Sequence record: MH494197.1
Length of the DNA: 64,000 nt
Direction: 5' to 3' (one strand)
Made by a program: the position numbers and the translations under genes. Each line of letters begins with the position of its first letter. Position 1 is the first letter of the stretch. The notes beneath the pieces were generated by a model. It was not told where the DNA came from and made no database searches. It saw nothing but the letters and a program-made list of their open reading frames with translations. Shown here in pieces: positions 5,454 through 33,094 of the stretch.

Positions 5454-6130
5454 TTACTTTATATAACCTTCACTCTTTAGAAAGTTCAGTACACGCTCTT
5501 TGAGTTTGTATGCTTCAGCTTTCTTTTCAGCGATGATGATATCTAAATCTTTTGCTTCATCGTACTTCGACTCATTCAGAACACGTTGACGTTTCTGTGC
5601 AGCCTTCAATGCTTCGGTAATTACATTGGTGTATTGTAAACCGGAACTGATGATACCAAGAACTTTTGCATCTGTCAACATTCTTCCTTCGTTGAGAAGG
5701 TTTACTAGTGTTAGTGCAGCTTCATACATCATAATATTATTCATGATAACTTGAGAACTATGATTACATTTAACACTGTATACTTTTGTTGATTTAGTAC
5801 CTTGAATTTTTCTTCTACTAAACTCCAGTTAGTTTTAGGTTTAGCAGGTGCACGTTGTACAACAGGTTGTGCTGGTTGGTGACCAAGCATGTGTTCATTG
5901 TATGGGGCGTGGAATGGAACAACATGTGGATGAGCCTGTTCTGGATCAACACCATAATTCATACCAGCTTCATTTAATGATGTCAATATGTCGGTCATTG
6001 CACCGATATCACCACCTGACTTGTAAGGAACACCAGACGCATTATGGGTTGCACCAGCTTCAATGTCATTCAAACCGCTTAACAAATCAGCCATCTGATT
6101 AACTGATTGTTGATCGTACTCGTAATTCAT
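5454..6130 (-). CDS. Hypothetical protein (two ORF fragments merged)
   Basis: ORFs 5741-6130 and 5454-5744 overlap by a frame change. Confidence 0.6.
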
Positions 6131-6134
6131 TTAT

Positions 6135-7298
6135 TACTCCTAACAGTTGAATACTCTTCAGTACCGTCATCTTTCTCAACAATATTTAGGACTCCACGAG
6201 ATACCATTTTATCCGCTAGTTCCTGATAGTATTCGTTTACTTTTCAACTGGCACGGAACCTCGTGCCTTAATTTTCTGTAATAGTCTGTATTCTTCGTTG
6301 GAAACCATAGTGTTGTGACCATGAACATTAGGTACAGTTCTCATTATCGGCCTCGCATACGGTGACAGAAATCAATGATTTGATCTACCATCTCATCATT
6401 CTCTTGTTGTGCAGAGTTTGCTATTACACTTTCATCACCATAGATATCATCTTCTTTTCGATATCAGCGATTGCATGAATCATTTCACCCATACCGGTGC
6501 GTGTTGTGTTAGTGGAGATGGTGAATTTGGATTACCGTCTGGTTCCATACCGGCTCACCCATCACTTCACTATTAATTTCTTGTGGTGATTTCTCTTCAC
6601 GAATTGTAGTACTTTGATTTTGATTGTCAACTGGAGTTACATCATCCAAAGGAAAACATTCAATTCGTTTGGCTTAGTGCCACTTTTAGTTACTACTAAA
6701 GATTGCTGTGGGTTTTGTCCAGCATCGATACCAACAACAGGTTCAATTGAATCAGTACCGCTTTGATTCCGGGCTAACTTTAATGTTATTAGCATTACGT
6801 TGTAGTTCTGCTTGTTTAAGTTTAGCTTGGGTTTGTGGGTTCACTTGCTGTTGTTGCTGTGACACATTCATTTTAGCAATCTGTGTAGATTTTAATTGAT
6901 TTTCTGGATTTTCCAAATTAGAGGATAAATCTTCAAACACAATAGTTTTTAATTCTTGAATACTCAACTTAGAAACATCAGAGTATGTGAAGTTACTTTT
7001 GTATGCTTCAACTAAGTCTTTCATTGTCATAGAATCAACTGTCTTATGCCAATCAGAACTTTCAACAATATGTTTAGTTACATTGTCAGTACTGAAGTAT
7101 GAGAAACTTTCACTCATTTGTGCTTTGTACTTTTGTAGAATTTGAAAAATTTCACGGTTATCTGAATTATCCATAGCGGCATTTAGTGTAATGAAATCAC
7201 CCGCATCCATATTATCCAGTACAACAGAAACATCAACATTCAAATTATGTGCGTCAGCAAACTTCTGTAGCTCCGCTGCTGTTTGGTTTATATCCATA
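6135..7298 (-). CDS. Hypothetical protein with Q/P-rich linker (merged)
   Basis: MDINQTAAEL... readable to about 6135 with several indels; TAAATA near 7343. Confidence 0.55.
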
Positions 7299-7351
7299 AT
7301 TACTCCATATAAAATAAAAAGACCTCTGTCTTGCTTTATGATATTTATCAC

Positions 7352-7744
7352 AATTAAGAAAAGGTCTGTTTGCTGATGCTAATATTTGTATCATTACCTG
7401 TTGTGATAAATTTTGTAATTCTTTTACCATTTAATTCTGTAGGTAAAACTAATGGTATTCCATTCAAACGCAAATCAACATCCATTGGTATTGCGAATTT
7501 GAAAGTACTAAGAGTACATTTACCCCATGAAACTGGAAGATTATAGAAAGATGCATTGTTATCTTTATATAGATCTATTTCAGTTTTACTACACTTACCA
7601 TCATGGGATAATCATGTACCATAATAGCCTCCAACAATCTCGACAAATTCATAGCACCTGTGAACTTAGAATCGATGATTGTTGGAGTTTACCATCACCT
7701 ATATCTACAACAGTATTAATTGTGTAGAAAGTATATGGTTTCAT
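7352..7744 (-). CDS. Hypothetical protein
   Basis: ATG at 7744 (MKPYTFYTINTVVDIG); broken by indels so absent from the ORF track. Confidence 0.45.
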
Positions 7745-7911
7745 TCATTATCCTTATTTTTAGTCTCAACAACTTTATATCCAAAGAAATTTGTAGGAGG
7801 CATTCTTCGAAGTAATGGGTAATTTAATCCAGTACTGACTGATGCTACTGCACCTGCTGATGTTGCACCAGCAGAAGCATTTTCTTTTAGTTTAGTTTTC
7901 TTCTTCATATC
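7741..7911 (-). CDS. Small hypothetical protein
   Basis: MKKKTKLKENASAGATSAGAVASV... Confidence 0.55.
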   Translation of the reverse strand, partial: DMKKKTKLKENASAGATSAGAVASVSTGLNYPLLRRMPPTNFFGYKVVETKNKDNE

Positions 7912-8173
7912 AATTCCCTTTATTACGTTTTTCATCAAGTGCTATGTTCTCCAAGCCCTTCTGAAACTTTTTATAATCTCGGTTCTTAATACTAAGAAAT
8001 AAACGTTTCTTCAAATCTTCAGCATCAGTTTGGTTAAATTCATCTTCGATACTCTCCAATAAATGAATAACAGAGTTGATTGCATGATCTGCACGATTAC
8101 CAAAACTCTGTAACGTATCTTTCTCTGGTGTATAGTCAACTATACTATCAAGTAGATTCTTTTATTGGATTTA

Positions 8174-9698
8174 CTAGACATTCATTATTTCCTTTGATTT
8201 AACCATTGCTTCATTGCATTTACGATCAGTACCAATGTGAGGCTGTTGAGGCTGGGATTCAGTTTGTGTAGAAGTGATTGGATCACTATCTGTATTTAGT
8301 GTTACGCTTTCAACACTCGGTGTAGTGCTTGGTTTAGGAGCACCAGAAAGCGTATGACGCAGTGTTTGCATTGTACTTGGTGGCATTGCCATGTTACCAC
8401 CGCCGACCTTAGAGATGCCACTGTGACGGAATCCTGACCCATCAGTTTCGAATTGTTGGATTGTGGTTGCGTGGTCTAGTACACGAAGTGAGTCGATATC
8501 ATATGACATACGCAAACGTGAACCAACTGCACTACTGTTACGTGTTTTCTGGAAGTCAAACCAAAGTTCGCCAGTTTCTTTACGTGCTTCAATGTAGATA
8601 ACGTTATCCGCAGTATAGATTTTAGAAATACCACCAGCAATCTGACTTTGACTTTTCTTATCTTCATCCATACCACTACGGTTAAACTGTGACGCAGTGA
8701 ATACGGTCAAATCCATTTTGGTTGCTAGTGCACGCAATTCTTCAGATACAAATTTATCTTTTGTAAATGTATTAGATTTATCATTAGGACCAAGACGATT
8801 TGATGTTAATAGGTCAAGGTAGTCCACACAAACATAATCTAATTTGACTTCCATTTTAATTTGCAATTCACGAAGATAACTTTCAATATCATCAGTGGTT
8901 GTTACGGATTCTGGTAAACGTTTAATACGCAATATACCACTATCCTTGCCTTCCATTTGAACTCGTAGACCAATCTTTTCAGCTTCGTTCTTAACGTTAC
9001 TTAGCTTAGATTCAGTCATCATACCATAGATACGAACGGCTACCAACTCTTCTGCTAGTTCTAGTGAAATGTATGCACCATTCATACCAGCCTTAGCAAA
9101 GTTAACTGCTAAGTTCTGTAGTACTACTGATTTACCACCACCAGACGCTGCTGCAAAGATTTCAAGTTCACGGCGACCAAAACCACCGAATAGTTTATAG
9201 TCAAGGGTTTCCCATCCACTCTTGAATGAACCTTGCATCGTGCTCAATGAACGAATGGTATCTTCTGGATTTTCAAAGATATCAAGACCAACTCATTCTG
9301 TACAGATACTAACATAGCTTCACGAATGAGTTCTTCGATGCCACCATATTTTTCTGATGTACTAATTCCATACCTTTCTCTGCTAGAGCTAGAGCTTTGT
9401 GACGGCAAAACTCACTACAGGTATCCAGTACTGCCTGTTTATGAAGTTCTTGTACTTCATAATGATCATACTGATAACCACCTTTCACTTCGATATCTTT
9501 CAGTGTAGGGGATGAACTATATTTTGCTGCATAATCATGAACGTACTGAATACTTTCATGAAATGTTTTATCAAAATATTCTGGCTTTAGAATATTTTTA
9601 CAACGTACAAATAAATCTGGATTACTGAAAACTTGGGATAGTAAGTATTGTTGTGCATTAATCCCATACTGTTTGACGTCCACTGTGCTTTGAATCAT
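8174..9698 (-). CDS. gp41: Replicative DnaB-like helicase (T4 gp41-like, merged)
   Basis: Walker A AAASGGGKS; YISLELAEE; VCVDYLDLL; TASQFNR; IAGGISKIYTADNVI. Confidence 0.93.
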
Positions 9699-9724
9699 TT
9701 ATGTTCCCTCATTTATATCCTGTG

Positions 9725-10773
9725 TTACATCCACTTATCCGTTTGTGCTTTAATATAGAAAGGCTCGTCAACTATACTATCATGTATCAGTTGTAAACAA
9801 AATAATCTTCCAAATCTAGCACATGCTTCGTCAAAATCTTTAATGTGACGTATAGTACTTCCAACACGTACTGCCCCAAAATCTGGGAAAGAAACACTAA
9901 ATCCATATTCTAGTGCTTGTTCTATTGTTTGTAATCCATCCTTATCACGGTCAGGTACGATAACAATCTTTTTACCTTTTTCTTGTGCAGCTTTAAGTAC
10001 ATCTATTTGTACTGCTGACAATTTAAAGTTATTTGCAGAAACACCACCCATTAGTGCTGCATCCATTGGACCTTCACAAACTAATATAGTTTTAATTCGT
10101 TCATCTTGTAACAGATCATAATTATATAGAATATTAGTACTGACCTGATTAATAAAACGATAGGTACTTCCGGTCTTTAAGTTTGTGTCTAGCAGTATAT
10201 CCGATAATTTTACCGTTCATAACGTATGGTATGATAAATCGGTCATACATTTTATGTTCTTTAGCTGGACTCAATACAATTCTAAATCTAATAGATATGG
10301 ATTTCGCTCATTCACATGATTCAGAACACTAATAAATTCTTGTGGTATTTGCTCTTCTGGTAACGATGCCCATTCCCAGAATGTTTTTGAGTTCGGTGGT
10401 AATTCACGAACAGTTACACGTTGATATAGTTTAGATGCAGTAGTTTCTTGTTCTGCAAAGTCTCCACTATCAACCATTTCTTTAATGTAAAATTTAGCTA
10501 GTTCTATTTCCTTATCCTGTGCACCAAAGAAATGAGCAAAGACTCCATATCTTTGCTCATATATTTTCCAGTTGCCACCCAGTTTTTAGACTACAGTTAA
10601 AACAGTTATAAGAAACAGAACCATCTGCATTAAACATATGATTGCCGCGATTTTTAGTATCGGGGCGTGAATGACCACGGAACACACAAGCAGGACAATT
10701 GTGATGTGTCCACATACCAATTCGGTACTGGGTCATTCATGATTTGTGCCATGATGTTTTGTACAGCGTTCAT
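9725..10773 (-). CDS. gp61: DNA primase (gp61-like; Zn-binding N-terminus plus TOPRIM; merged)
   Basis: Cys/His-rich N-terminus, CFNC, LVCEGPMDAA, IVPDRDKDG. Confidence 0.85.
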
Positions 10774-10802
10774 AATTTAATCCTTGTTATTTCTCACAAA
10801 TG

Positions 10803-10830
10803 ATTATAGCACAAACACTTGTTTTGTCTC
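10803..10830 (-). promoter_or_regulatory. Promoter GAGACA-N16-TATAAT (TGn-extended) upstream of primase
   Basis: Minus strand GAGACA AAACAAGTGTTTGTGC TATAAT. Confidence 0.75.
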
Positions 10831-11799
10831 ACCTGCGAATCAAAATTTTAGGAACTGACAGTAGTGGGTCATAGACTTTTCTTACTGCCGCATAGTCATA
10901 AGGAACTGGAACGATCTTAGGATGAATACAAACAACCAATCGCAACCACATGTAATTACCTTTAAAATTAAATGCTTGAATCCCATCTAACGCTTTAGGG
11001 AATCCATTTTCATCAATATCATTTTCGATATATTCTTTACCATCCAATTTAACAATAAACCATTTATAGTTTTCGTTATCAGTTGGTACGTTATTACACA
11101 AACATCCTTGTAATTGAATTCTACCAATAAATTTATCAAAGTACATTGCAATAGTACTAAGACCATCAACTAATCCGTACTGCATTTGTGCAGGAAGGGA
11201 GATGTTGCCATTATATCAAATTCACCAATAACGCCACGAGCGATTGGTTCATGATAAAGCGTTTGATGGTAGTCCATGCTGGGTTTTATTAACAGATACT
11301 TCAATACTTGGCACAAACACAGGAGCAGCTTGGTCGGAAATGATCAATTCAGCAGAGGCTTCATAATCAAGACCAGTGTATAAGTACTGTGTAGGTTCAA
11401 TCAAGGAACCATCCATTGTTACTTTAGTAATACTCCATCTATATTTTGAACGGGACTAGTATCCTGAATTACACCAGCAGGAACAATACATCCATAATAT
11501 ACTTTTTACTATTACCTAATGTTTGTCTTGCTTGTCCACTTTCTGATAGCCATGATGGTTTTGTTTATCCAGAACTACATCGAATAATTTAGTATTGTTT
11601 CTAGCATCAAAAATCATGAATGTTAGATATTCGTTATCTTTTAGTAATGTATATTTTCCATCAGCATTATGCACAGTGAATGATAAATTGTTATTTGCAC
11701 CTCTGTATATTGTAAGTTTCTCATTGCTGTATGGCATATTAAAATTGCCCAATGATACTTCTTGGTTATAAGGGTACATAAACACGCCGTGATGAGCCA
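10829..11799 (-). CDS. Probable virion structural protein (merged)
   Basis: MAHHGVFMYPYNQ...LTIYRGANNNLSFTVHNADGK readable through to KGNYMWLRLV; late promoter at about 11840. Confidence 0.55.
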
Positions 11800-11811
11800 T
11801 AGTTTTTCCTT

Positions 11812-11850
11812 CCATAAATAATAGGTATAAATTTATACTAATATTTATGG
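11812..11850. promoter_or_regulatory. Back-to-back late promoters (inverted ATAAATA)
   Basis: CCATAAATA...TATTTATGG inverted repeat between divergent genes. Confidence 0.6.
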
Positions 11851-11857
11851 AACTCAT

Positions 11858-12210
11858 ATGAATCAATATAATACTATTCCACCATTTATCACGGTAGTTC
11901 AGTGTGATGGTAAAACTTTCATTGGTATTATCAAGATAAAAAGTAAACAGTATACTACTCTTTACTGCTTTGATGATATGGATGAACCAATGCAAGATGA
12001 ATTGTTGGGTATAGCACATGATTGGTGGTGGCAAAGCAACAGGTCAATTCCAGTCTGTCTATTCTTCCAAGAAGAGATGGAGAAATTTGAACCTTACACA
12101 CAGAGATTCGATACCTGCGGTGAATTTCGTTTGTGGTCCAGTAGTTTCTTTATGATTTGCCACAAAACGCATCAAGCGTCGTAATGTGGCTCTTAAGAAG
12201 AAGTAAGATG
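11858..12210 (+). CDS. Hypothetical protein
   Basis: 108-aa ORF (HDWWWQSNRSIP) downstream of ATAAATA; end approximate. Confidence 0.65.
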
Positions 12211-12825
12211 TTCAACTAAAGCGTTAAGTTGAACTACAATCATTAAGCTGTATGCATACGCATGTGGCTTTTTGAAATATCGTAACTTATTTCCTGCTTG
12301 GTCTGTGCCAATAGTACTGTAATCCCATATAGTGGATTCAACTTCACTCCATGTATTCATACTTTGGCACTGCCTTTTCAGACGAATCATTGCAATAAAC
12401 ATTGCAAGTTCATCAATGGATTTAGGTTTCCACACATTTAATAATGTAACGTGTTTTTAATCTGTGAAAGATGTTCAACTATTTCTGGTTCTAACAGAAG
12501 ATCCCAATTAGGTTCCTGATTCATTAGTTCTTTTAAATGTGCTCTATCACGAACATACTGGTAAGCCGATTGTGACAGGATATCTACCTTTTGATATCCC
12601 AAGCGTTCGGCTTCTTTATATTGTATGCTGGCTAAACCAGTGATAGGGTCAATTGGTATATTATCAAAATGAACACCACTGTTATGGGGATTAAACCATC
12701 CTCCGTAATTTTTCTGTACTTCGCACACAAGGAAGCTGTGCAATCACTGACTTACTATCTTTAAAGTCAATGTCGATATCTGTTCGTGCTTTACGGTACG
12801 AATTAGAATTTGTCGAATCCTGCAT
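12193..12825 (-). CDS. Miniature DNA polymerase III alpha (DnaE)-like catalytic-core protein, about 210 aa (merged)
   Basis: DIDIDF, HNSGV, KVDIL, AMIRP, YFKKPHAYAY correspond in order to DnaE PDIDxDF, HAAG, KxDxLG, ALxRPG, FNKSHAxAY. Confidence 0.8.
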
Positions 12826-13131
12826 TTTTGATTTGCTCCTGCAATTTGTTTACAGTGTTAGATAATTTGGTTACCTGATTTTCTAACATTGTACACTTTG
12901 TTTGGTCTTTGACAACTCTTGACTTAGACCAAAGAATCTTTCCTCATGTCTTTCAACCATACTGATAATTTTTTCTACACGAACAGGATCGTGCACCTGA
13001 AAGGTTTTACCATCAAGTGTAATTTCAGTTATAGAACCCTGTCTAAGCAATGATAAAGATTTAGATTTATCTGCTTTTGGCACAGGTACATACCCTTCTG
13101 GTATTTTATTATATATACTTTTTCCATTCAT
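12803..13131 (-). CDS. Hypothetical protein with C-terminal coiled coil
   Basis: ORF 12883-13131 extends across an indel to ...QIKNAGFDKF. Confidence 0.6.
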
Positions 13132-13835
13132 AATCCAGCCTCACGTAGCATACTTTTTATTTCATCACATTCCTTTTTGTACTTTATAGTTTTAACCTCA
13201 AAGTAACTAGGATCAATGTATTTAAGTATATACTCGATTTCAGAGTTAGAGAGATTCTTGAAAAACTTATTAGTACTTTCTTTTGGTGCTAACCAGATAA
13301 TCCAAGGTGAAATCTTACCACTCTCAATCCATGCAATTGCACGGGCAGAACTAACATTGGAAAAAACTTATTCCACTCCAAGTTCAGATTCTGACCCCAT
13401 TCCACCATCGCAACAACACTACGGAAACCGCAGCATTGGGAGATTCAGAACGAATACAATCTAATATCCATTCATCCTTTGCTTTATAAGTACTCCATTC
13501 CATAATAGGACGGTTTCTTACAATTAGACTTTTTACAAAACCATCAATATCTAAAATATCACGGTTGTTCAAATAATAAATTGCAAAATCATAAAAATCA
13601 CTAAAGTACTTTGATTTTATAAAAGCCATTAATGGTTCAACACCCTTCTTGAAAGGGAAATGGTTTAACTCCATGAATTGCATATAATGCGAAAAGCCTC
13701 CCTCATGGGGCGGCTATCACGATCTTCGTAGCGGTCACGTTTAACACACTTATGTGTGTTAACTGTGTCTTCGCGTTTAAATTCTTTATCACAGAACTTA
13801 CATTTGTATACGGGACTACTTGATTTCTTTGCCAT
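13127..13835 (-). CDS. Protein with N-terminal C2H(C/H) zinc-finger (merged)
   Basis: MAKKSSSPVYKCKFCDKEFKREDTVNTHKC joins ORF 13384-13683; C-terminal GKISPW. Confidence 0.7.
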
Positions 13836-13839
13836 ATTT

Positions 13840-14659
13840 CTTACATTCTTCTTTAAATAATTTCATCATTGATTTCATTTCTTTCTCTTGTAAACCTATG
13901 TCTTCAAGGAAAGACTCGAATGTTTTTTGTTATATTGCAACAAAACAATTTTATATTCATCTTCGTTCATTTGAGTTGCGATTGAATCTGGCTGTGTACT
14001 TTTAATGAGTTCAAATAATTCATTATTAGCACGCTTAAAACTCTTGGAAAAGTTTAACCAGTTTCGTGGCAATTCCTTACCACCCAACATATCATGAACA
14101 GAACATAGTAGTTGATATACAAGTTCAGGGTGTTCTTTCATGTCCCAGAACCCATCATTAACCATATCATTCAACATAATCAACTGATAACGTACAACGT
14201 CACTGTCAACCAATGAGATGATCTGTCCACCAGCAATACTAAATTCAGTCATTGCGGCAATCAACTTGTTAGCATCATCATTGCTTTGTACGGCAAACTT
14301 GATACGCCAATCATAGTCACTGTGACAGTACTTAGTAACTGATGTTACATTAACACCAGTACTATTGAGTTCTTTGACAAGTTCAGTGAGTGCTTCTTTG
14401 CCACCAGCTTTCCACTTACCAAATACGTTTTCCACTTTACTACTAGGAAAGTTACTTGAAGTGAGTCATCAAGTGAACTTACCCAACGAAGTACAGTATA
14501 AGGCGTAAATTCCTTACGCTCATCTTCGGTCATGTCATTATAGTATTTGTAATCTGCACGGTCAATATGTTTTAGAAATTCAGCAATAGAAAATGTATGC
14601 TGGGTTGGTTTATCGTTTTCGTCTACTGACTTAGCTTTAATATTACTGAAATCTAACAC
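13840..14659 (-). CDS. gp62: Clamp-loader small subunit (gp62-like) with long internal extension (merged)
   Basis: IDRADYKYYNDMTEDERKEFTPYTVLRWVSS resembles the gp62-family N-terminal motif; C-terminal HPELVYQLLC. Confidence 0.6.
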
Positions 14660-14669
14660 TATTACACTC

Positions 14670-15158
14670 CTAGATACAAATCTTGAATTTTCTCGTTCTC
14701 ATCTGCAAAGTAAACACAAGGTGGATTGTCACCACTGTGCAGAGGAACACATAGTAAGTTCTTCTTAGGCAACATAGGATCTGCCATTTAGTAGTGAGTG
14801 CGAATACACGCAGCACTTTTACAGGTTCGAACTTAGGATACATTGAGCGGATTGGATTGTAAACAAAAGCTTTAGGTTCTTTCATATTAAGAATGTTTTC
14901 AATGGTACACATCTCAACCATACCTGTCTCTTCATCACCCAACATGATTTGCCAACCCAATGGTACTTGGATAATCTTTTCACCAATCTGCAAATCAGCA
15001 CTGATACTATTAAATGACACAGTGTTTAAAATGTGGCGAAAATAAAAGTCAGAGTCACCGTTTGGACTCAAATCTAAAACACAATACATTTCTGATGGAA
15101 TGTGTTCAGTTACTAAATCCATATCAAATGAATTATTTTCTGGGGTTAATACGTTCAT
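14670..15158 (-). CDS. Hypothetical protein
   Basis: 162-aa ORF with RBS GGAG. Confidence 0.7.
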   Translation of the reverse strand: MNVLTPENNSFDMDLVTEHIPSEMYCVLDLSPNGDSDFYFRHILNTVSFNSISADLQIGEKIIQVPLGWQIMLGDEETGMVEMCTIENILNMKEPKAFVYNPIRSMYPKFEPVKVLRVFALTTKWQILCCLRRTYYVFLCTVVTIHLVFTLQMRTRKFKICI

Positions 15159-15167
15159 CTCATCTCC

Positions 15168-15593
15168 TTAGTACTGGGAATCTTCATCTTCATCGTAGTA
15201 ATCTTCTTCATCTTCATCGGATGTACCATAGAATTCAAGACCATACGTTTCACACATTTCTTGAATCTTATCAACATCAGTATCTAAGTAAGAATCAAAA
15301 TTACCACTAAGACTAACAACATCAATAAACGTTGTAGTATCAGTACTTGCATAGATGATATCATATTTTAATGATTCAACTTTCGAGTCAATTCTGGTTT
15401 GCAATTCATAGATATTAATCCATGAATTAGTGTCAATATTACATCTCCAAACATTAGTATCGTCAGTTTCTAGTTCAGGTATATAGTCAAGTGAAGATAC
15501 CATGTCATCCATAATACCATCATTCAACAATACATCAATTACATCTAACGTTTCTTGGTCACAGATAAAAGCAATACTAGATCTTAATTCCAT
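15168..15593 (-). CDS. Hypothetical acidic protein
   Basis: 141-aa ORF downstream of the promoter at 15629-15655. Confidence 0.7.
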   Translation of the reverse strand: MELRSSIAFICDQETLDVIDVLLNDGIMDDMVSSLDYIPELETDDTNVWRCNIDTNSWINIYELQTRIDSKVESLKYDIIYASTDTTTFIDVVSLSGNFDSYLDTDVDKIQEMCETYGLEFYGTSDEDEEDYYDEDEDSQY

Positions 15594-15628
15594 TTTTATT
15601 TTACTTCCTTGTTGTTGTCATACGACAC

Positions 15629-15655
15629 ATTATATCATGCACAGCGGATTATCCC
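15629..15655 (-). promoter_or_regulatory. Promoter GGGATA-N15-TATAAT (TGn); upstream box inside an inverted repeat
   Basis: TGA-TATAAT; ACAGCGG...CCGCTGT inverted repeat at 15641-15660. Confidence 0.55.
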
Positions 15656-15680
15656 GCTGTATTTTCCCAATCCTTAACAT

Positions 15681-17125
15681 CTATGATACTATGAGGATAT
15701 TGTGCTTCCTTGTAGTATTGTAAACGTTCACGTAAGTGTTTTGCACTATATTTGTTTGTACCACTGATATCAAAGATTTCCACGTGGTCTTTGTCTTCTG
15801 CTCGACGCAACCCACGACCAATGGACTGTATGGTACGAACGAAGCTCTTTCCGGTTCGATTAGAACAACATTATACAAACGAGAAATACTGATACCAGTA
15901 CTTGCTACCCCATAGGTTGCAATGAGTATTTTGTTATCAGCCCAGCGAATTTCACCATATGAAGATTCACGATCTTTCTTTTGGTTTCACCACGAACAAA
16001 TTCTGACTTAGGAATACCCAAAAATTCACAAAGTAATTCACCAGCTTCAAGTCTATCAACCAGTACTAAAGTGTTTCCAGATTCTGCTAACGCACCTATC
16101 AGTGATGCTACATATGCCATTCTATCACGGTCAGTAACTAAGTACTTCAATTCTTCTGCATATGACGCGAACTTTAAATTACTTTTAAGTTTAATACAGT
16201 TCACATTACATGTGCTTAGTATTTTTTATCTTGTAATTCTTTAGCTGTGATTTTAAATATCACATCGCCAACGTTACATTTAATCTTCGCAGCGACAACT
16301 TGGTCTTTAGGATTGTACCAGTTAATCCCCAGCGAAGTGGGACGTTATTCATAACTTTAGAGAGTACTTGAACTAATGCATCACCACCAGCACCTTGACA
16401 CTCATCAACAATCACACAAACCACACCATCAATAAAGTCATGAACGTCTTGTTCAGTCAGTTCAATTTCACCTTTCTTTGTTTTCTTCCACAAAGAGTTG
16501 AATGACTGCCGTAGTGATTGTGTGTTGGTGACCAAAGTCTTTCTGTGCACCATAGAACACTCCAGTGTCAAGACCACACATAACATAGTCATCATATGTT
16601 TGCTGCACCAAATCAGTACTGGGTACGATAATCACAGAACGTCCATACTCCTGTACCTTCTTGGATAATGCTGCTGTGATGAGCGTTTTACCAGCCCCTG
16701 TAGCTGCTAATAATAAACCATGTGGGTTTGCAAGGCAAGCATTAACTGCGTTCACCTGATGCTCTCTGAGCTTGATTGACTTACCTTCCATGTGGTGTCC
16801 AGCACCAAACACAACATCACTAAAAATATCTTCATCAATTGGTTCAAAATTGAATCCGTAATTGACACGATGATCTTCAAGTTCAATATCAATTTTGCTT
16901 CATCTAAGATTGGCAACAACTTATCCAACATGTGGTAGTAAGTACTGCCACCTAAGTTCATAAACTGTACCTTACCATCCCAACGACCAATACGACCAGC
17001 AGGGGTGAACTTAGCGTATGGAAGTACATATTCTGTTGCACGAATCATCTTCTGACGAATTGAGGATCTAGTCCCTCAAATTTACAATTAACCTCGTCCA
17101 GTAAGGTTAGCTTACAAGTTTTCAT
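15681..17125 (-). CDS. uvsW: UvsW-like SF2 DNA helicase (merged)
   Basis: KFTPAGRIGRWDG; LREHQ; AATGAGKT; IVDECQ; RWGLTGT; IEPGKSFVRTIQSIGRGLRR. Confidence 0.93.
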
Positions 17126-17140
17126 CCATGAATACCTTTA

Positions 17141-17959
17141 TTAATTAGTTCGAGTATTATATTCGTACTCAAATGTATATACTAAATCTTTATCACAGTT
17201 TGGGTTACTTGCATCAAGAATATCACTGTTAGTAATCATCCATTCAATATAGTTCAATGGAACAGTTTCCATTGGTTCGCCTTTGTGTTTACCAAATGGC
17301 ATGAATTTATAACGCATTGGTGTATTACAGAATGTTACGATTTGTTCACCAATGTCACCATTAGGGTCAATATGTCCACGTTCAATCGCAACTTCAATCA
17401 ATTTGATTAGAACTTGATAACACATAAACACGTCATCTTTTGCTGCGTGAGCATTGACTGCACGATGTACATCACGATAGCAACCAAATTTATACCACAA
17501 ATAACTTAGAGTTAAGTTTTTGAATTCAGTGTCTTCTGCAAACATCTTCTTAGCTAAACGAAGGGTACAAATCCATTTATCTTCATCGAGCAAGTACTGC
17601 GAAACTGAGTTACGATATTTATATTCGTTATCTACCATCATTCGGCGGTCAAATTGAACGTTGTGTCCAATAAAATAATTACGACACCCCATTAGTGCGT
17701 CAATGTTTTCTAAGTCATCTTTATATCCAATGCAGTTTGCTACATCTTCAGTACTGATAAAATGCACAGCACTTGCTTCTGGTGGTATATCTTTTAGTGG
17801 TTTATAACGCAAAGTGTAGTTATCAATAGTATCAATATTCTCATGTGCACCGTGAGGATATGAAATACTAAATTCAATAATATCATCTTCACTTTCTACA
17901 CCAGTCGTTTCGGTGTCTAGTACTGATACGTTTGATAGGAACTCATCTAATTTTGTCAT
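17141..17959 (-). CDS. DEDDh 3'-5' exonuclease (ExoX/DnaQ-like) with C-terminal MPFGKHKG domain
   Basis: VLDTETTG, GHNVQFD, HAAKDD; MPFGKHKGEPMETVPLNYIEW; intact ORF. Confidence 0.9.
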   Translation of the reverse strand: MTKLDEFLSNVSVLDTETTGVESEDDIIEFSISYPHGAHENIDTIDNYTLRYKPLKDIPPEASAVHFISTEDVANCIGYKDDLENIDALMGCRNYFIGHNVQFDRRMMVDNEYKYRNSVSQYLLDEDKWICTLRLAKKMFAEDTEFKNLTLSYLWYKFGCYRDVHRAVNAHAAKDDVFMCYQVLIKLIEVAIERGHIDPNGDIGEQIVTFCNTPMRYKFMPFGKHKGEPMETVPLNYIEWMITNSDILDASNPNCDKDLVYTFEYEYNTRTN

Positions 17960-17974
17960 TTTATTCTCGATAGA

Positions 17975-17998
17975 AAAGGACGCGTAATGCGTCCTTAT
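17975..17998 (-). terminator. Intrinsic terminator after uvsX-uvsY
   Basis: AAGGACGC/GCGTCCTT stem followed by a T tract on the minus strand. Confidence 0.7.
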
Positions 17999-18004
17999 GG
18001 ATAG

Positions 18005-18461
18005 TTATTCTAAACGTGCATCTTCAATACCCGCAGCACGTAGTCTCACAATATTGTTTAACTGAAAAGCTTTCATCTCTAAGGATTTAACAATACTGGA
18101 AAACGTATTACGGATATATGATACTTCATTTATTAGTTCGGATAATTCACAAACTTCTTTATCACCTTCAACATACTTTTACAGTCAGAAGATGATAGTG
18201 CTCGACGATATGCTTCAAGGAAATATTTAAACTTTTCAGCTTGTAGTTGACGCATTTCAATTTCTAGCATTTCAAGTACCGCTTTAGTTCTTGAAGCTGA
18301 CTGAGACGAGTCTCATGCCAGCCGAATCTCCTGAGCAATCTTTTCAATGATGCCAATCTTTTTAACTTCACGACGAGCTTCTTCAGTTTCTTTTTCGAAG
18401 TGTTCAATCATGTCGATTATTTTAGATTTATCATCTTTGATGATCCAATGCCAAGGTTTCA
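18005..18461 (-). CDS. uvsY: UvsY-like recombination mediator (merged)
   Basis: Helical ~150 aa protein ending KKYVEGDKEV...SLEMKAFQLNNIVRLRAAGIED; adjacent to RecA. Confidence 0.75.
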
Positions 18462-19579
18462 TTATTCCTCACTACTTCCAATATCAGTACCAAATGATTC
18501 ATCACCTTTTTCTTCTTCTTTGACTTCTTCAATCAAAGGGTGACGTTTGAATTGATTCATAACTAAATCAAGACAAGAATCTTCGTTACGCATCCATTCT
18601 TTACGATATTTTAGAATCTGTTCACCAGTGTCAATATCAACGTACATTAGACGTTACCCGATTTAACGATAAGTTCATATTTCTCGAACATATCTAGTAG
18701 ACCACTGCGTGGGTCCATACCTTTATCCCAAGGAATTTTAATCTCAACATCTTCAAATGGTTTGTTGTAACGAGTCTTCATGACTTTACATTTAGAACGA
18801 ATACCACTTACATCTGAAGTCTTGTTGCCTTCTTCATCTTCTTTAAGTTTTAGTTTACCCATTGCGATAACCATAGAAGATGCATAAATCAAACCACTAC
18901 CACCAGATACTTTTGGATCAGGGTTGAACATATCTTGGGATTCATAACTATGGTTTACACAAACCATACCAATGTTAAGTGAACCAATCGAGTTTACGCA
19001 GTTGGTGATGTAAGCTTTAAGCTGTTTAGGTTTGTGACCCATATCACCTTTCAAGTTACCAGCTTTCATCTGGTCATTAGCAACTTCAGTATTCAACATA
19101 CCAATTGAGTCGATAATGAATAATACTTTTTGACGTTCTTCTTTAGGAGTATTTTCGTATTCTTTACGATACCCTTCGATGAACTCATAGGTAAATTTAG
19201 CAACATCACCAATCATACCCATGTTTACTTTTAGTAGTTTTTCTTCTGAAGTGTCTACACCTAGTGCTTGTAGCCAATCTGAATCCAATGCGTTCTCGGA
19301 ATCAATCATAACAACAAAGATACCTTGTTGTTGTGCTTCACGGGCGATGTTTCCAGAAACGATAAATGATTTACCAGAACCAGATTCACCAGCAAACATT
19401 GTTACTTTACCCAGTGGAATACCACGGTCAAAATAACCACTAATACGATAGTTCAAAGCAAAGTTACCAGTACTAATCCATGTATCAGGATCATGAAAGC
19501 CTACGCTAACACCAGTATTCTTTTTAACGCTACCAGTACTATTTTTTAGAATGTTTGCAAAACCACTTGTCATTTTCAT
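18462..19579 (-). CDS. uvsX: RecA/UvsX recombinase (merged)
   Basis: ISTGNFALN, FAGESGSGKS, IDSENAL, IIDSIG, VSGGSGLIYASS. Confidence 0.95.
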
Positions 19580-19643
19580 AATTCGCTCCTTGAATTTTAT
19601 GAATAAAACCGCAAACTCCGTTGCCCTTAACTTTCAAATACTA

Positions 19644-20687
19644 TTACTTACCTTGTTGTTTCAAACGAGCAACTAGTGCAGATGCAGAAAGTTGTTCTTT
19701 TGGAGCTTCAGCTACTGGTGCTGGTGCAGCAGCTACTGGTTCAGCAGCAGGAGTAGGAGTAGCTACTGGTGCTTGCGGTGCAGGAGTTTGTGCAGGAGCA
19801 GGTTGTTGTACTGGAGCTTGTGGAGCAGGTTTGTTTTCACTAATAGTACCAGTTGTTGGTTTTGTACACCTGCTGGACGGTAAGCGAAAGCCCAACGTGC
19901 AGGGTCATAAGGTTTACCATCAACAGATGCTTCGAACATTTCTTCGATAGCTTTTAGTTCTTCTGAGTTGGTTGTTTTGGCATAAAATCATTTAGATTAT
20001 ATAGACCAAACTTTTCAATCGCTGCCAGTTCTTCTTCATTGAGTGGACGCTCTGACATGGAGAATTGAGACATGTCATAGCTATTGTAACCACCACCATT
20101 CTTAGTTTTAACAATACCAAAGTCACGACCGTGAATGTAGTGAGTTGGTAGTTCTTTGATGCCCGGTTTAGCAGGATAGATTTAACTTTATCAAAGATAT
20201 CTTTGTTAGCTAGGATACGACGGATTGGGTTTTCTGGAGCAATATCGTCTTTTACTGCTACGCTATCAGAGCAACGAAACATTGCATTAGATAGGTTTTC
20301 TTTTCCAGTAACGACCAGCCATTGCTTTCAGTTCTTCGTTTCCAGTTTCATTCGCACTTTGGAACCATTGACGTACTTCTTTAAGAATTGGACATGATTT
20401 AGGAACCCACATTTCGTTACATGGTACTTGAACGGTAACTTTATCGGTGTGCATACCAACAATACCTTGGAACGTTAGGTTGATCATATCACGTTCACGC
20501 CAGAAGAATGGGTTAGACTCATCAGCATCTGGTAGAAAACGTAGGTTTAGTGGTTCATTGTAAGGGACATTCCAGAAAGCTAGGAAAGAATCGGCTTTAC
20601 GTTCACCTGTAAATGTACCATTCTTCTGTGCTTCTGCTTTTCTTGTTCAGCTTTTAGTTTTGCACGAATTTCAGCTAGAGTTTGCAT
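19644..20687 (-). CDS. gp32: Single-stranded DNA-binding protein (gp32-like, merged)
   Basis: MQTLAEIRAKL; LRFLPDADESNPFFWRER; VPCNEMW...CPILKEVRQWF; P/A-rich tail. Confidence 0.9.
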
Positions 20688-30094: not shown

Positions 30095-33094
30095 TTTCCT
30101 TACGGTGAAGAATCCGTTATTAACGGCTGCTGTACTTTTCTCATGAATACCAATATCCATATCCAGAATACCAAAAATGTTTTCTAATTTTTAGTTAGAA
30201 CTATTTCTTCCATTTTCTCTGTATCAAATGGTAGTTCTAGGAACCATTCAGGTAGATATTCCACACAGTCAATTGGATAACCTACTGCTTTGATACCCAT
30301 CGGGTTATCTTTTAAGTTACATACAATTACTTTTGTACCGTCAGTTACTTCAGGTACAGTTTTGTCATCATATACTTCACGTAGACGGTTCCATTGAATA
30401 CCTGCTAATACATGACCAACTTTACATTTACCAGAAACTTCATATTCTGCTTCTAAGTTGGTATAGTTCTTAACAGTTTTCGGTGAACCTTTTTCGTGTA
30501 CTGGCATGTCTTTAAATACCTCTTTAAAGTCACGTACACGCTGTTTAAGTTGAGCTTCAGACTCACCCACCAGCAATGCAATTAGAGTCTCTTCTAGGAA
30601 GTTCTGGATGTATTTTGGCGTGTCTGAACGTTTAATTTCAAGACCCATCGCTTTAATTTCACCGGCTTACCATCAACATCTTTACGGAAACCATCTTCCC
30701 AGTACTTGAGAATTGCATAACGCTTTTCTTCAGGAATAGACCACGGAACCGACCATCTCTAAGTCTGCACCAACAATCTTACCTTTCTCAATACCAGTAT
30801 TGAACATTTCGTTCATGAATGAAGGGAATGATTCGCCAACTTCATCACCGATTTTGATATACATGTCAACGATTTCTTCTTTAGAAAGATTATATGGAAT
30901 ACCTTGTTCTTTCAGGTAATGAGTTACACTGAAGTAAACGGAGTCAGTATCACCGTAAATCACAGAGCCACCTTGATGATTATAAACACCAGTAGTGATT
31001 TCATTGATACGGCTTGCCATATGTTTAGTCATAGAACGACCAGTTAAGGTAACGGACTGACCTAAACGCTTATCAAAGAAACGTGAACCTTTGTTCAATA
31101 GTGCACCATATAGACTGTTTAGAAGAATCTTACGAATTTGCTGGTTCTGTTTCCAGAATGCACTTTGCTGTTTGAAGTAATTCTTATCTTCCGGTGCACA
31201 GAAAATACGACCATCTTTCAGTACTAAACCATTTTCCACAATGAGTTTTGCAACTTCTTCCCATTGACCTTTACCAATAGCAATACGTAATAGATAAACA
31301 GGATCATTGTCATGTAAGTTTGTACGGAACATTGTACCACTTGTGTAGTTAGATAGCAAAGGTTCAACCTTCTCAGAACCATTGAATTCCCACCCATCAC
31401 TGTACATGTGTTTGTAGTCGATTACCATTTTTGTTGTGCTTTACGCTCAGAATACCATTGAGTAAGAATATCTGGAATTACACCATACTTAGACTTATCA
31501 AAAAGTGTTCCGTTAGCACTTAGTACAATAGTACTGTCTTCAGCAAAGATAATATCATACAATTCTTTACCAGTTGCATTGAACGAACTACCATCTTCTA
31601 AATCAACAATCAAAGTTTTGTCAGATTTTTCATGAACCATTGTAAATTCTACAGCAGCAAATAAACCATGCCATGCTGCGGTCCAATCAGGTTCAAACGC
31701 TTTAGATTTGGATTTAGCTTTTTGTTCTTGTACTTTAGCAGCAAGATATGCATCAGTGTAGTCTTGACGAAGTTGTCCAAGAATACATTCAGTACTCATG
31801 CCAAGTGTACGTAGTACAGTTGGATACAATGAGTTAAAGTCTGTACATCCCAAATCGCTAACAAGGCCAAGAACTGGATCTTGAACCCATGCACCAGCAG
31901 CTTTTGCACTGATTTTCTCATCTTCTTCATCACCTTCTTCACCATAGTACTCCATCTCTGGATCTAACTCAAAATCATCCTTCGGTGCTTTGTTAAAACA
32001 ACTTCACCGCGTGAGTGAGCGAGGTTGATAATAGCAGTGTCGATTAGTGCAACAGAACCCATTGTGGTACTAATTAGTACACATTCTTTATGAGCAAGAC
32101 GGTTATGCAGGTTGATAAAGTCACATTTAGCATCAATTTTCTTTAGAAGAATACTATCCTGCTTAGAATAACGCAAGAATGTAATGTAATCTTCTCGGTA
32201 TAATTTATCCAATGAACCTTCATAGGATACTTTGTTTTCTTTAGTTACTTTTTCAGCAATATAATCTAGTTTGTACGACTGTTCAACTTGACCAGCATGT
32301 TTCTTATAAAGAGCAAGATAGTCTAAGTGTACGCGACCAATAAGATCATACGTTACTACAGTTTTACCAAAGTTATCAGCTTCACGAGCATTTGGTTTTT
32401 ATTCCACAAGCACCAACGAGCAGTAGTTGCTTCATTGAAGATTTTCTTGGTACGGTTTACCATATATGGAATATCAAAGAATTCACTGTTCCAACCTGAA
32501 ATTACATCAGAGTCATCGATTAGACTAAAGAACTCCATAAACATTTCTTTCTCATCCGTATAAAGGATGACAGTACTGTTAGGTCGTTAGTTTCTTCGTT
32601 TAACTGACGAACAATATCTTGTGCTTCGTACATTTCCATATCAGTTGGTGGTAAAGTCAGTACATAATCCTTACCAGTCCATGATTGATATAGAGAAATT
32701 GCAGTTACACGGTTGAATGGATCTGATGGTGGAGCATAACCAAACTTCTTATGGAAGTCGGTTTCGATATCGAAAAATGCTACGTTCAAATCCGGCGAAC
32801 CTTTACCCATGTATTCTCTAGCCAACGTTTTGAAGGTAATGTTGCAATCACTTTCAAAAATACGTAGACCTTCATTTTTATGTTGCTCAACGCTTTTATT
32901 CATCTGTGATTGAGTTTCAAACTCCAAATGCTTTGCGTTGGTTCCATAAATTGTTTTGTGTTCACCAGTAGGAGATTCAACATAATATTCATATACTGGG
33001 TCCAACTGACGTAGAATACGTTTACCGTTTTACGTTCTGCTACGTGCAAAATATCACCAGTACGTTTACGTTCCATATAAGCATCGATATACAT
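30095..33094 (-). CDS. gp43: Family B DNA polymerase (gp43-like, merged)
   Basis: FDIET (ExoI); GWNSEFFDIPY; DFNSLYP; KILLNSLYG; YGDTDS. Confidence 0.97.

Follow-up and report, generated by a model that had tools for sequence, protein, structure and literature searches.

The C-terminal unit of a predicted split minimal DNA polymerase III alpha subunit in Escherichia phage CMSTMSU

The locus and its sequencing errors

The window analyzed here is a stretch of DNA of 64,000 nucleotides, the minus strand of which carries, at positions 12193-12825, the gene for a small protein that we denote the C-unit, i.e., the C-terminal unit of a split minimal alpha subunit of DNA polymerase III (Pol III). Upstream of this gene on the same strand are the remnant of a gene for a small protein, a Zn-finger protein gene and a gene annotated as a clamp-loader subunit; fragmented genes for a DnaB-like helicase and a DnaG-like primase lie downstream, and part of a family-B DNA polymerase (PolB) gene is found further away (Table 1). 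A blastn search of the GenBank phages with positions 11800-13900 of the window as the query recovered, as a 100% match, Escherichia phage CMSTMSU (MH494197.1, 386 kb; a position in this record equals the window position + 248000), a member of Asteriusvirus whose record bears the GenBank label UNVERIFIED_ORG. The same query matched nine coliphages with 97.7-99.1% identity and RaK2/121Q-type jumbo phages with ~83% identity.

An earlier examination of this stretch (hereinafter, the sequence-only reading) placed at this locus a DnaE core of about 210 amino acids with its motifs in the DnaE order. The motifs DIDIDF, HNSGV, KVDIL and FKKPHAYAY are indeed encoded in this order on the minus strand at 12193-12825, but AMIRP, which was listed with them, is not literally present (AMIRL): the window reads AMIRLKRQ where the 99%-identical relatives have AMIRPGKRQ, because a net loss of 3 nucleotides at 12379/12380 turns IRPGK into IRLK. 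Nor does the window hold the single continuous gene that was implied. The motifs sit in three open reading frames (ORFs) in three different frames because the CMSTMSU record contains one-way homopolymer deletions; once repaired, the reading is the intact 212-aa gene of the relatives. The counterpart in phage Turkey3 is an uninterrupted 212-aa ORF (Turkey3 segment 6399-7037, minus strand) annotated as 'DNA polymerase III subunit alpha'. A profile derived from the relatives matches all three fragments of the window (E = 4e-8, 5e-42 and 3e-34), with profile positions 3-199 spanned by the matches, and the motif pattern of the C-unit is far beyond what could have arisen by chance.

Comparison of the window with Turkey3, which is 99% identical, revealed 62 deletion events and 0 insertions in 14.1 kb (window 5834-19872), with 37 of the 62 located within runs of at least three bases; this one-way undercalling of homopolymers probably extends through the window beyond 5834-19872. 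In all nine coliphages with 97.7-99.1% identity, the aligned span is 14-15 bases longer than the 2101 bases of the window, and the genes for DnaB, primase, PolB, the UvsW-like helicase and nearly all other genes are chopped into short ORFs. Given the 62 deletions against 0 insertions, the equally broken DnaB, primase and PolB genes and the UNVERIFIED_ORG label, we read the frameshifts as artefacts, that is, the breaks in the C-unit gene of CMSTMSU come from assembly or base calling in the form of systematic homopolymer undercalls. The alternative that the CMSTMSU copy is a genuine pseudogene, with frameshifts of biological origin, takes at face value the three frameshifts and the 3-nt loss of the deposited gene; it appears very improbable considering that all 62 indels are deletions, mostly homopolymeric, in a record that is itself flagged, that DnaB, primase and PolB, which are broken as well, are needed by a viable phage, and that the gene is uninterrupted in Turkey3, the one examined of the nine relatives with a longer aligned span. 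Because CMSTMSU is full of homopolymer undercalls, odd small ORFs in this genome should be compared first with their counterparts in the 99%-identical relatives.

Table 1. Features of the C-unit locus and of related genes in the window (window positions; lengths are those of the intact genes where so stated)
Feature	Position	Strand	Correspondence and evidence
C-terminal unit (C-unit) of the split minimal Pol III alpha	12193..12825	-	212 aa if intact; three frames here; Turkey3 alignment, PHROG 11778, profile matches
Fragment 1: N-terminal leader and DIDIDF strand with the catalytic Asp pair (E. coli D401/D403)	12691..12825	-	D16, D18 and D20 invariant; aligned with PDIDIDF of M. tuberculosis DnaE1
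Fragment 2: PHNSGV strand, KVDIL with the third Asp (E. coli K553/D555), start of the fingers	12438..12743	-	H48, G51, K80 and D82 invariant
Fragment 3: finger helices, IRP(G/A)K (here IRLK), FKKPHAYAY (E. coli FNKSHSAAYA, 753-766)	12193..12435	-	Turkey3 alignment, conservation
First frameshift, homopolymer undercall A6 to A5	12709..12713	-	Comparison with relatives
Second frameshift, homopolymer undercall C5 to C4	12686..12689	-	Comparison with relatives
Third frameshift, homopolymer undercall A6 to A5	12454..12458	-	Comparison with relatives
Loss of 3 nt in total at 12379/12380, three neighboring short runs being one base shorter each	12375..12384	-	Turkey3 alignment
Residual part of the upstream gene for a 109-aa protein (PHROG 14909, 'virion structural protein')	12883..13131	-	In relatives with intact genes, shares 23 nt with the start of the C-unit
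Zn-finger protein gene, PHROG 11058	13384..13835	-	236 aa if intact; PHROG
'Sliding-clamp-loader small subunit' (Turkey3 annotation)	13896..14659	-	281 aa if intact; annotation
DnaB-like helicase and DnaG-like primase genes, fragmented	8174..10736	-	Conserved downstream neighbors of the C-unit
Family-B DNA polymerase gene, matched part	30919..31170 (record 278919-279170)	-	1010-aa open frame in Turkey3; fragmented here

Relationship of the C-unit to family C polymerases

The C-unit belongs to PHROG 11778, annotated as 'DNA polymerase' (E = 2e-106). A word-based protein search detected 789 homologs, the best 120 of which are ~157-220 aa long (one of 157 aa, the rest of 190-220 aa). For some of the homologs, the source records give the name 'DNA polymerase III alpha subunit', and the expectation in the sequence-only reading that relatives might already be annotated proved correct: several records carry the names 'DNA polymerase' or 'DNA polymerase III subunit alpha', and the family was published in 2021. 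Across 27 homologs, with identity down to 39%, residues D16, D18, D20, H48, G51, K80, D82, R149, P150, K152, K187 and H190 are invariant. These include the three catalytic Asp residues (D16, D18 and D82), the conservation of which had been proposed as a check. In the same 27 homologs, the finger motifs IRP(G/A)K and FKKxHAxxY show little or no variation and follow the third Asp in this order.

A direct search of the intact C-unit sequence against PDB chains yielded no match. In the Pfam comparison of the C-unit, DNA_pol3_finger (PF17657) alone was detected, below the threshold (13.7 bits against a cut-off of 22, E = 0.04), and PF07733 gave no match; an equally weak DNA_pol3_finger match was obtained for 8 of the 27 homologs (best E = 0.003). 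A search of PDB with the profile of the 27 homologs matched only DnaE1 from Mycobacterium tuberculosis, with E ~1, in four collinear segments that include the motif pairs (phage/DnaE1) DIDID/PDIDIDF, IRPxK/YRPG and FKKxHA/FNKSHA. On E. coli DnaE, the C-unit profile falls on residues 401-421, 595-642 and 753-766.

An AlphaFold model of the C-unit built from the alignment (pLDDT 91.1, pTM 0.74) was used for structural searches. The 13 best Foldseek matches in PDB are all Pol III alpha subunits, with probability up to 1.00. VIA-align ranked 12 chains of C-family polymerases first (Z 9.8-6.0), ahead of a chain with Z 4.0, and aligned ~200 of the 212 C-unit residues, which correspond to residues 400-784 in 2hnh (E. 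coli DnaE), at a sequence identity of 14-19%. The comparison with the DnaE palm that the sequence-only reading had proposed accordingly returned C-family polymerases alone; neither a corrected sequence lacking the Asp triad nor a fold unlike that of Pol beta, the outcomes named there as contrary, was found. The identification of the C-unit as a predicted DnaE-type (family C) palm and fingers core with the Asp triad is supported, and it rests on the structural match, the collinearity of the motifs and the partner gene described below because the statistics from sequence comparison with DnaE are weak (Pfam E 0.04; PDB profile E ~1).

The C-unit shares with bacterial DnaE (2hnh; 2hpi, 3e0d and 4iqj from Thermus aquaticus; 5lew and 7pu7, DnaE1 from M. 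tuberculosis) a Pol-beta-type palm, the DxD...D triad, a Lys residue adjoining the last Asp of the triad and the finger motifs RPG and FNKSH, all in the same order, with Z up to 9.8 over the ~200 aligned residues. Unlike the bacterial protein, which comprises 1160 aa in one chain, the phage enzyme amounts to ~384 aa in two chains, has almost no thumb and shortened fingers, lacks the PHP domain, the beta-clamp motif, the OB fold and the tau-binding tail, and differs at the sequence level to the extent that the C-unit stays below the Pfam thresholds. The absence of the PHP, clamp-binding and OB domains that had been noted from the sequence is borne out here: the C-unit aligns with E. coli DnaE from ~400 to ~784, so that the PHP domain, clamp-binding motif, OB fold and tau-binding tail fall outside the aligned range, and the PHP, beta-clamp-binding, OB-fold and tau-binding domains have no Pfam match in the C-unit or in its partner. 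Since the DnaE thumb and a finger segment of ~100 residues are missing, DNA binding and processivity may differ from those of a classical polymerase.

The N-unit and a two-gene polymerase

A PF07733 scan of whole phage records identified one further gene, a 172-aa ORF in Turkey3 (XMR01320.1), which is annotated as 'DNA polymerase III subunit alpha', as is the C-unit gene of this phage, and which we denote the N-unit. Against a cut-off of 23.9 bits, it reaches 35.7 bits when the genome is scanned and 36.4 bits (E = 5.8e-9) when the protein itself is searched. It belongs to PHROG 11127 ('DNA polymerase') and also matches PHROG 405 (phage DnaE) at positions 359-429 of 1190. The C-terminal region of the N-unit, which ends with ...EFLK, was aligned to residues 322-392 of E. 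coli DnaE, and the motif GxGRGSSVxSY is invariant in 12 N-unit sequences. In E. coli numbering, the N-unit sequence ends at residue 392, just a few positions before the conserved part of the C-unit sets in (~400). When folded alone, the N-unit yields pLDDT 66 overall and <50 for residues 1-71; the top 9 Foldseek matches are all Pol III alpha, though with weak E-values (0.2-3), and for the first 70-90 residues neither a detectable homolog nor a confident fold (pLDDT <50) was found. The CMSTMSU copy of the N-unit is frameshifted and lies at positions 229454-229573 of the record, ~18.4 kb before the start of the window. The distance between the two genes is ~31 kb in CMSTMSU and ~32 kb in Turkey3, and they belong to different gene blocks.

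Relatives of the C-unit are encoded in at least 588 viral stretches of IMG/VR. An N-unit above the Pfam cut-off is present in 11 of 13 large viral contigs that contain the C-unit, including all 5 with a completeness of 90% or more; the two contigs lacking the N-unit are 79% and 29% complete. In the large contigs, the two genes are separated by ~34 kb to ~300 kb. Among 80 viral loci, the reading frame of the C-unit is 189-246 aa long (one is truncated by the end of the contig), and there is neither a fusion to the N-unit nor an N-unit gene within 6 kb of the C-unit; this tally of fused and adjacent units covers viral contigs. A second, weak PF07733 match seen in two IMG/VR relatives (E = 5e-4 and 7e-3; positions 1501-1713 in one of them) is considered spurious; it lies across a dCMP-deaminase-like ORF with internal stops.

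These findings bear on whether the C-unit could act by itself. The triphosphate-binding GRGS motif (hG[GS]; E. coli ~360-366) is absent from the C-unit polypeptide, the start of which corresponds to E. coli ~400. The C-unit is not a complete core of ~210 aa because one segment of the palm, with the GRGS motif (E. coli DnaE 322-392), is encoded by the separate 172-aa gene; thus, the part of the sequence-only reading that stands is the predicted family C palm and fingers with the Asp triad, as indicated by structure, collinear motifs and invariant residues, and the part that falls is the completeness of the core, with the GRGS segment on a separate gene ~31 kb away. The C-unit has the three catalytic Asp residues and the finger motifs, and it folds confidently by itself in the model (pLDDT 91), as would be expected of a self-sufficient mini DnaE core acting as a specialized nucleotidyltransferase. 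Nevertheless, we consider this version improbable, given that the C-unit begins past the GRGS segment that defines Pol-beta-type palms and that a separate GRGS-bearing protein ends exactly at the junction and co-occurs with the C-unit in 5 of 5 near-complete genomes.

The position of the junction also bears on the manner in which the two halves might be joined. Cyanobacteria have naturally split DnaE genes whose products are joined via split inteins, and the phage system resembles the cyanobacterial one in that two distant genes encode DnaE. An intein-mediated split with ligation of the halves by protein trans-splicing is nevertheless hardly credible for the phages. No IntN of ~100 aa follows the ...EFLK(W) sequence, homologous to DnaE, with which the N-unit ends; only 12-15 poorly conserved residues precede the DIDID strand of the C-unit, with no IntC of ~35 aa; and a Pfam Hint/intein match is absent from both units. 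With no additional sequence where the N-unit and the C-unit meet, no room is left for the intein halves. Unlike the cyanobacterial proteins, the phage halves have no intein parts and each is far smaller, and the cyanobacterial DnaE split site differs from that between the N-unit and the C-unit.

Taken together, these observations suggest that positions 12193-12825 very probably encode the C-terminal part of a minimal Pol III alpha that is specific to phages and divided between two genes, the products of which would form a small templated polymerase, and that the breaks in the gene are artefactual. The C-unit contains the beta-strand that bears the two metal-binding Asp residues (DIDID), a strand where the Lys and the third Asp are located (KVD), and fewer finger helices than DnaE (IRPxK, FKKxHA); the N-unit contains the GRGS helix-loop that holds the triphosphate in Pol-beta-type nucleotidyltransferases. 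Under this model, the two units would associate non-covalently and, once joined, would rebuild a single palm with a complete active site. The pair could then function as a small template-dependent DNA polymerase in phage replication or repair, beside the T4-like family-B replicase, with primer extension, synthesis of one strand and repair being the possible jobs.

A split minimal Pol III alpha is already known. It was described from sequence for the 'group 2.2' jumbo phages, with a C-unit that binds Mg2+ and the template and an NTP-binding N-unit encoded by a distant gene, was proposed to cooperate with PolB in one-strand synthesis or repair, and was put forward as a model of the ancestral bacterial replicase (Iyer, Anantharaman, Krishnan, Burroughs, Aravind 2021, Viruses 13:63, PMC7824862). 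The system analyzed here resembles the group 2.2 enzyme in every biological respect that was compared: the ~200-aa C-unit has, as predicted from sequence and model, the Mg2+-binding and template-binding parts alone; the NTP-binding N-unit is a separate, distant gene in the same genome; the 386-kb Asteriusvirus jumbo phage has a T4-like PolB, DnaB, primase and, by annotation, a clamp loader; and the family is phage-specific, CMSTMSU being a RaK2/121Q-type jumbo phage. The only differences are that the CMSTMSU copy is corrupted by errors and that the partner lies outside the window. Full-length phage DnaE proteins of the same superfamily (PHROG 405), found in jumbo phages of group 3.2 (Bacillus phage G, for example), are host-like single-chain proteins with a PHP domain and serve as the main phage replicase (Iyer et al. 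2021, PMC7824862). Unlike these, the CMSTMSU enzyme is minimal, split and encoded alongside PolB.

Thus, this window provides no new biology beyond the idea of Iyer et al. 2021; what is added here is an independent structural confirmation, a precise placement of the split on E. coli DnaE (~393/400), the co-occurrence count and the conserved neighborhood. An active site shared by two small proteins without accessory domains would make this the smallest known natural family C polymerase. The question that it raises concerns the hundreds of jumbo phages that, with a complete T4-type PolB replisome, retain a split Pol III under strong selection.

Gene neighborhood and possible roles

Analysis of the 80 viral loci revealed a conserved gene order that includes an SF2 (UvsW-like) helicase, the Zn-finger protein, the C-unit, a 277-aa protein, the DnaG-like primase and the DnaB helicase. 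Each of these neighbor families was found in 44-74 of the 80 loci, in phages that are 37-47% identical. On the upstream side, several small proteins are encoded on the C-unit strand besides the UvsW-like helicase, among them a ~230-aa family homologous to the Zn-finger protein, which immediately precedes the C-unit in 61 of the 80 diverged loci. As the sequence-only reading had it, the phage also possesses a family-B polymerase and a primase, together with the DnaB helicase.

In Turkey3, the upstream genes, namely those for the annotated clamp-loader small subunit, the Zn-finger protein, the 109-aa protein and the C-unit, overlap or abut. This packing fits a single transcription unit, in line with the earlier suggestion that the C-unit gene forms one unit with the clamp-loader and Zn-finger genes; the other element of that suggestion, the identity of the clamp loader, fared less well, as a Pfam search with the annotated small subunit produced no match and the annotation is therefore unconfirmed. 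A scan of promoters and terminators gave 28 sites against 19.8 +/- 5.1 expected and is not above background. A sigma-70-like site (TTGTCA-16 nt-TACAAT, 10/12) was observed at 12888-12915 on the minus strand, ~60 nt upstream of the C-unit start and within the end of the preceding gene.

The composition of the enzyme and of its neighborhood is also relevant to the type of reaction that is catalyzed. Pol-beta-type nucleotidyltransferases span many non-templated activities, and the two-part enzyme might be active without being templated, as a terminal transferase, in primer or RNA tailing, or as a maker of signaling or decoy nucleotides for counter-defense. With the thumb, clamp-binding and OB parts gone, a full family-B replicase already present in the phage, and literature searches on the split phage Pol III alpha that turned up neither biochemical nor genetic assays of polymerase activity or N-C association, such an activity deserves consideration. 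However, it appears unlikely in view of the invariance of the DnaE-specific finger motifs (RPG and FNKSH), which line the template/dNTP site of DnaE, of the closest structures, which are exclusively replicative C-family polymerases, and of the location of the gene within a deeply conserved replication block that extends from the UvsW-like helicase to the primase and DnaB. For the roles in DNA modification or anti-defense that the sequence-only reading had entertained, the analysis provides no support beyond their being conceivable.

For the split Pol III alpha, a more specific scheme can be outlined, which we put forward tentatively and regard as fairly unlikely. The heterodimeric mini Pol III would not be a second replicase; its active site would be complete only when the halves meet, and it would perform a dedicated job beyond that of PolB, such as extension of primase products before hand-off (compare DnaE acting for PolC in Bacillus), lesion bypass or a non-templated transfer in anti-defense. 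The conserved ~230-aa Zn-finger protein and the 277-aa neighbor could then be additional subunits that take the place of the missing thumb or clamp-binding parts.

The gene between the C-unit and the primase (window ~10830-12030, minus strand; Turkey3 segment 5024-6001) is annotated as 'tail fiber protein' in Turkey3. A homologous family of ~277 aa, for which a Pfam search detected no match, occupies this position on the C-unit strand in 74 of the 80 diverged viral loci. A tail-fiber role looks doubtful for this gene, which may encode an unrecognized replication protein.

The strand block of the C-unit also includes, ~4 kb upstream, a gene for a DnaQ/RNase T-type 3'-5' exonuclease (window ~17150-17960, minus strand; Turkey3 segment 11372-12190), which matches PF00929 (E = 1e-14) and is annotated as Pol III epsilon. 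This exonuclease is a candidate for a separate proofreader, either of the mini Pol III or of another enzyme.
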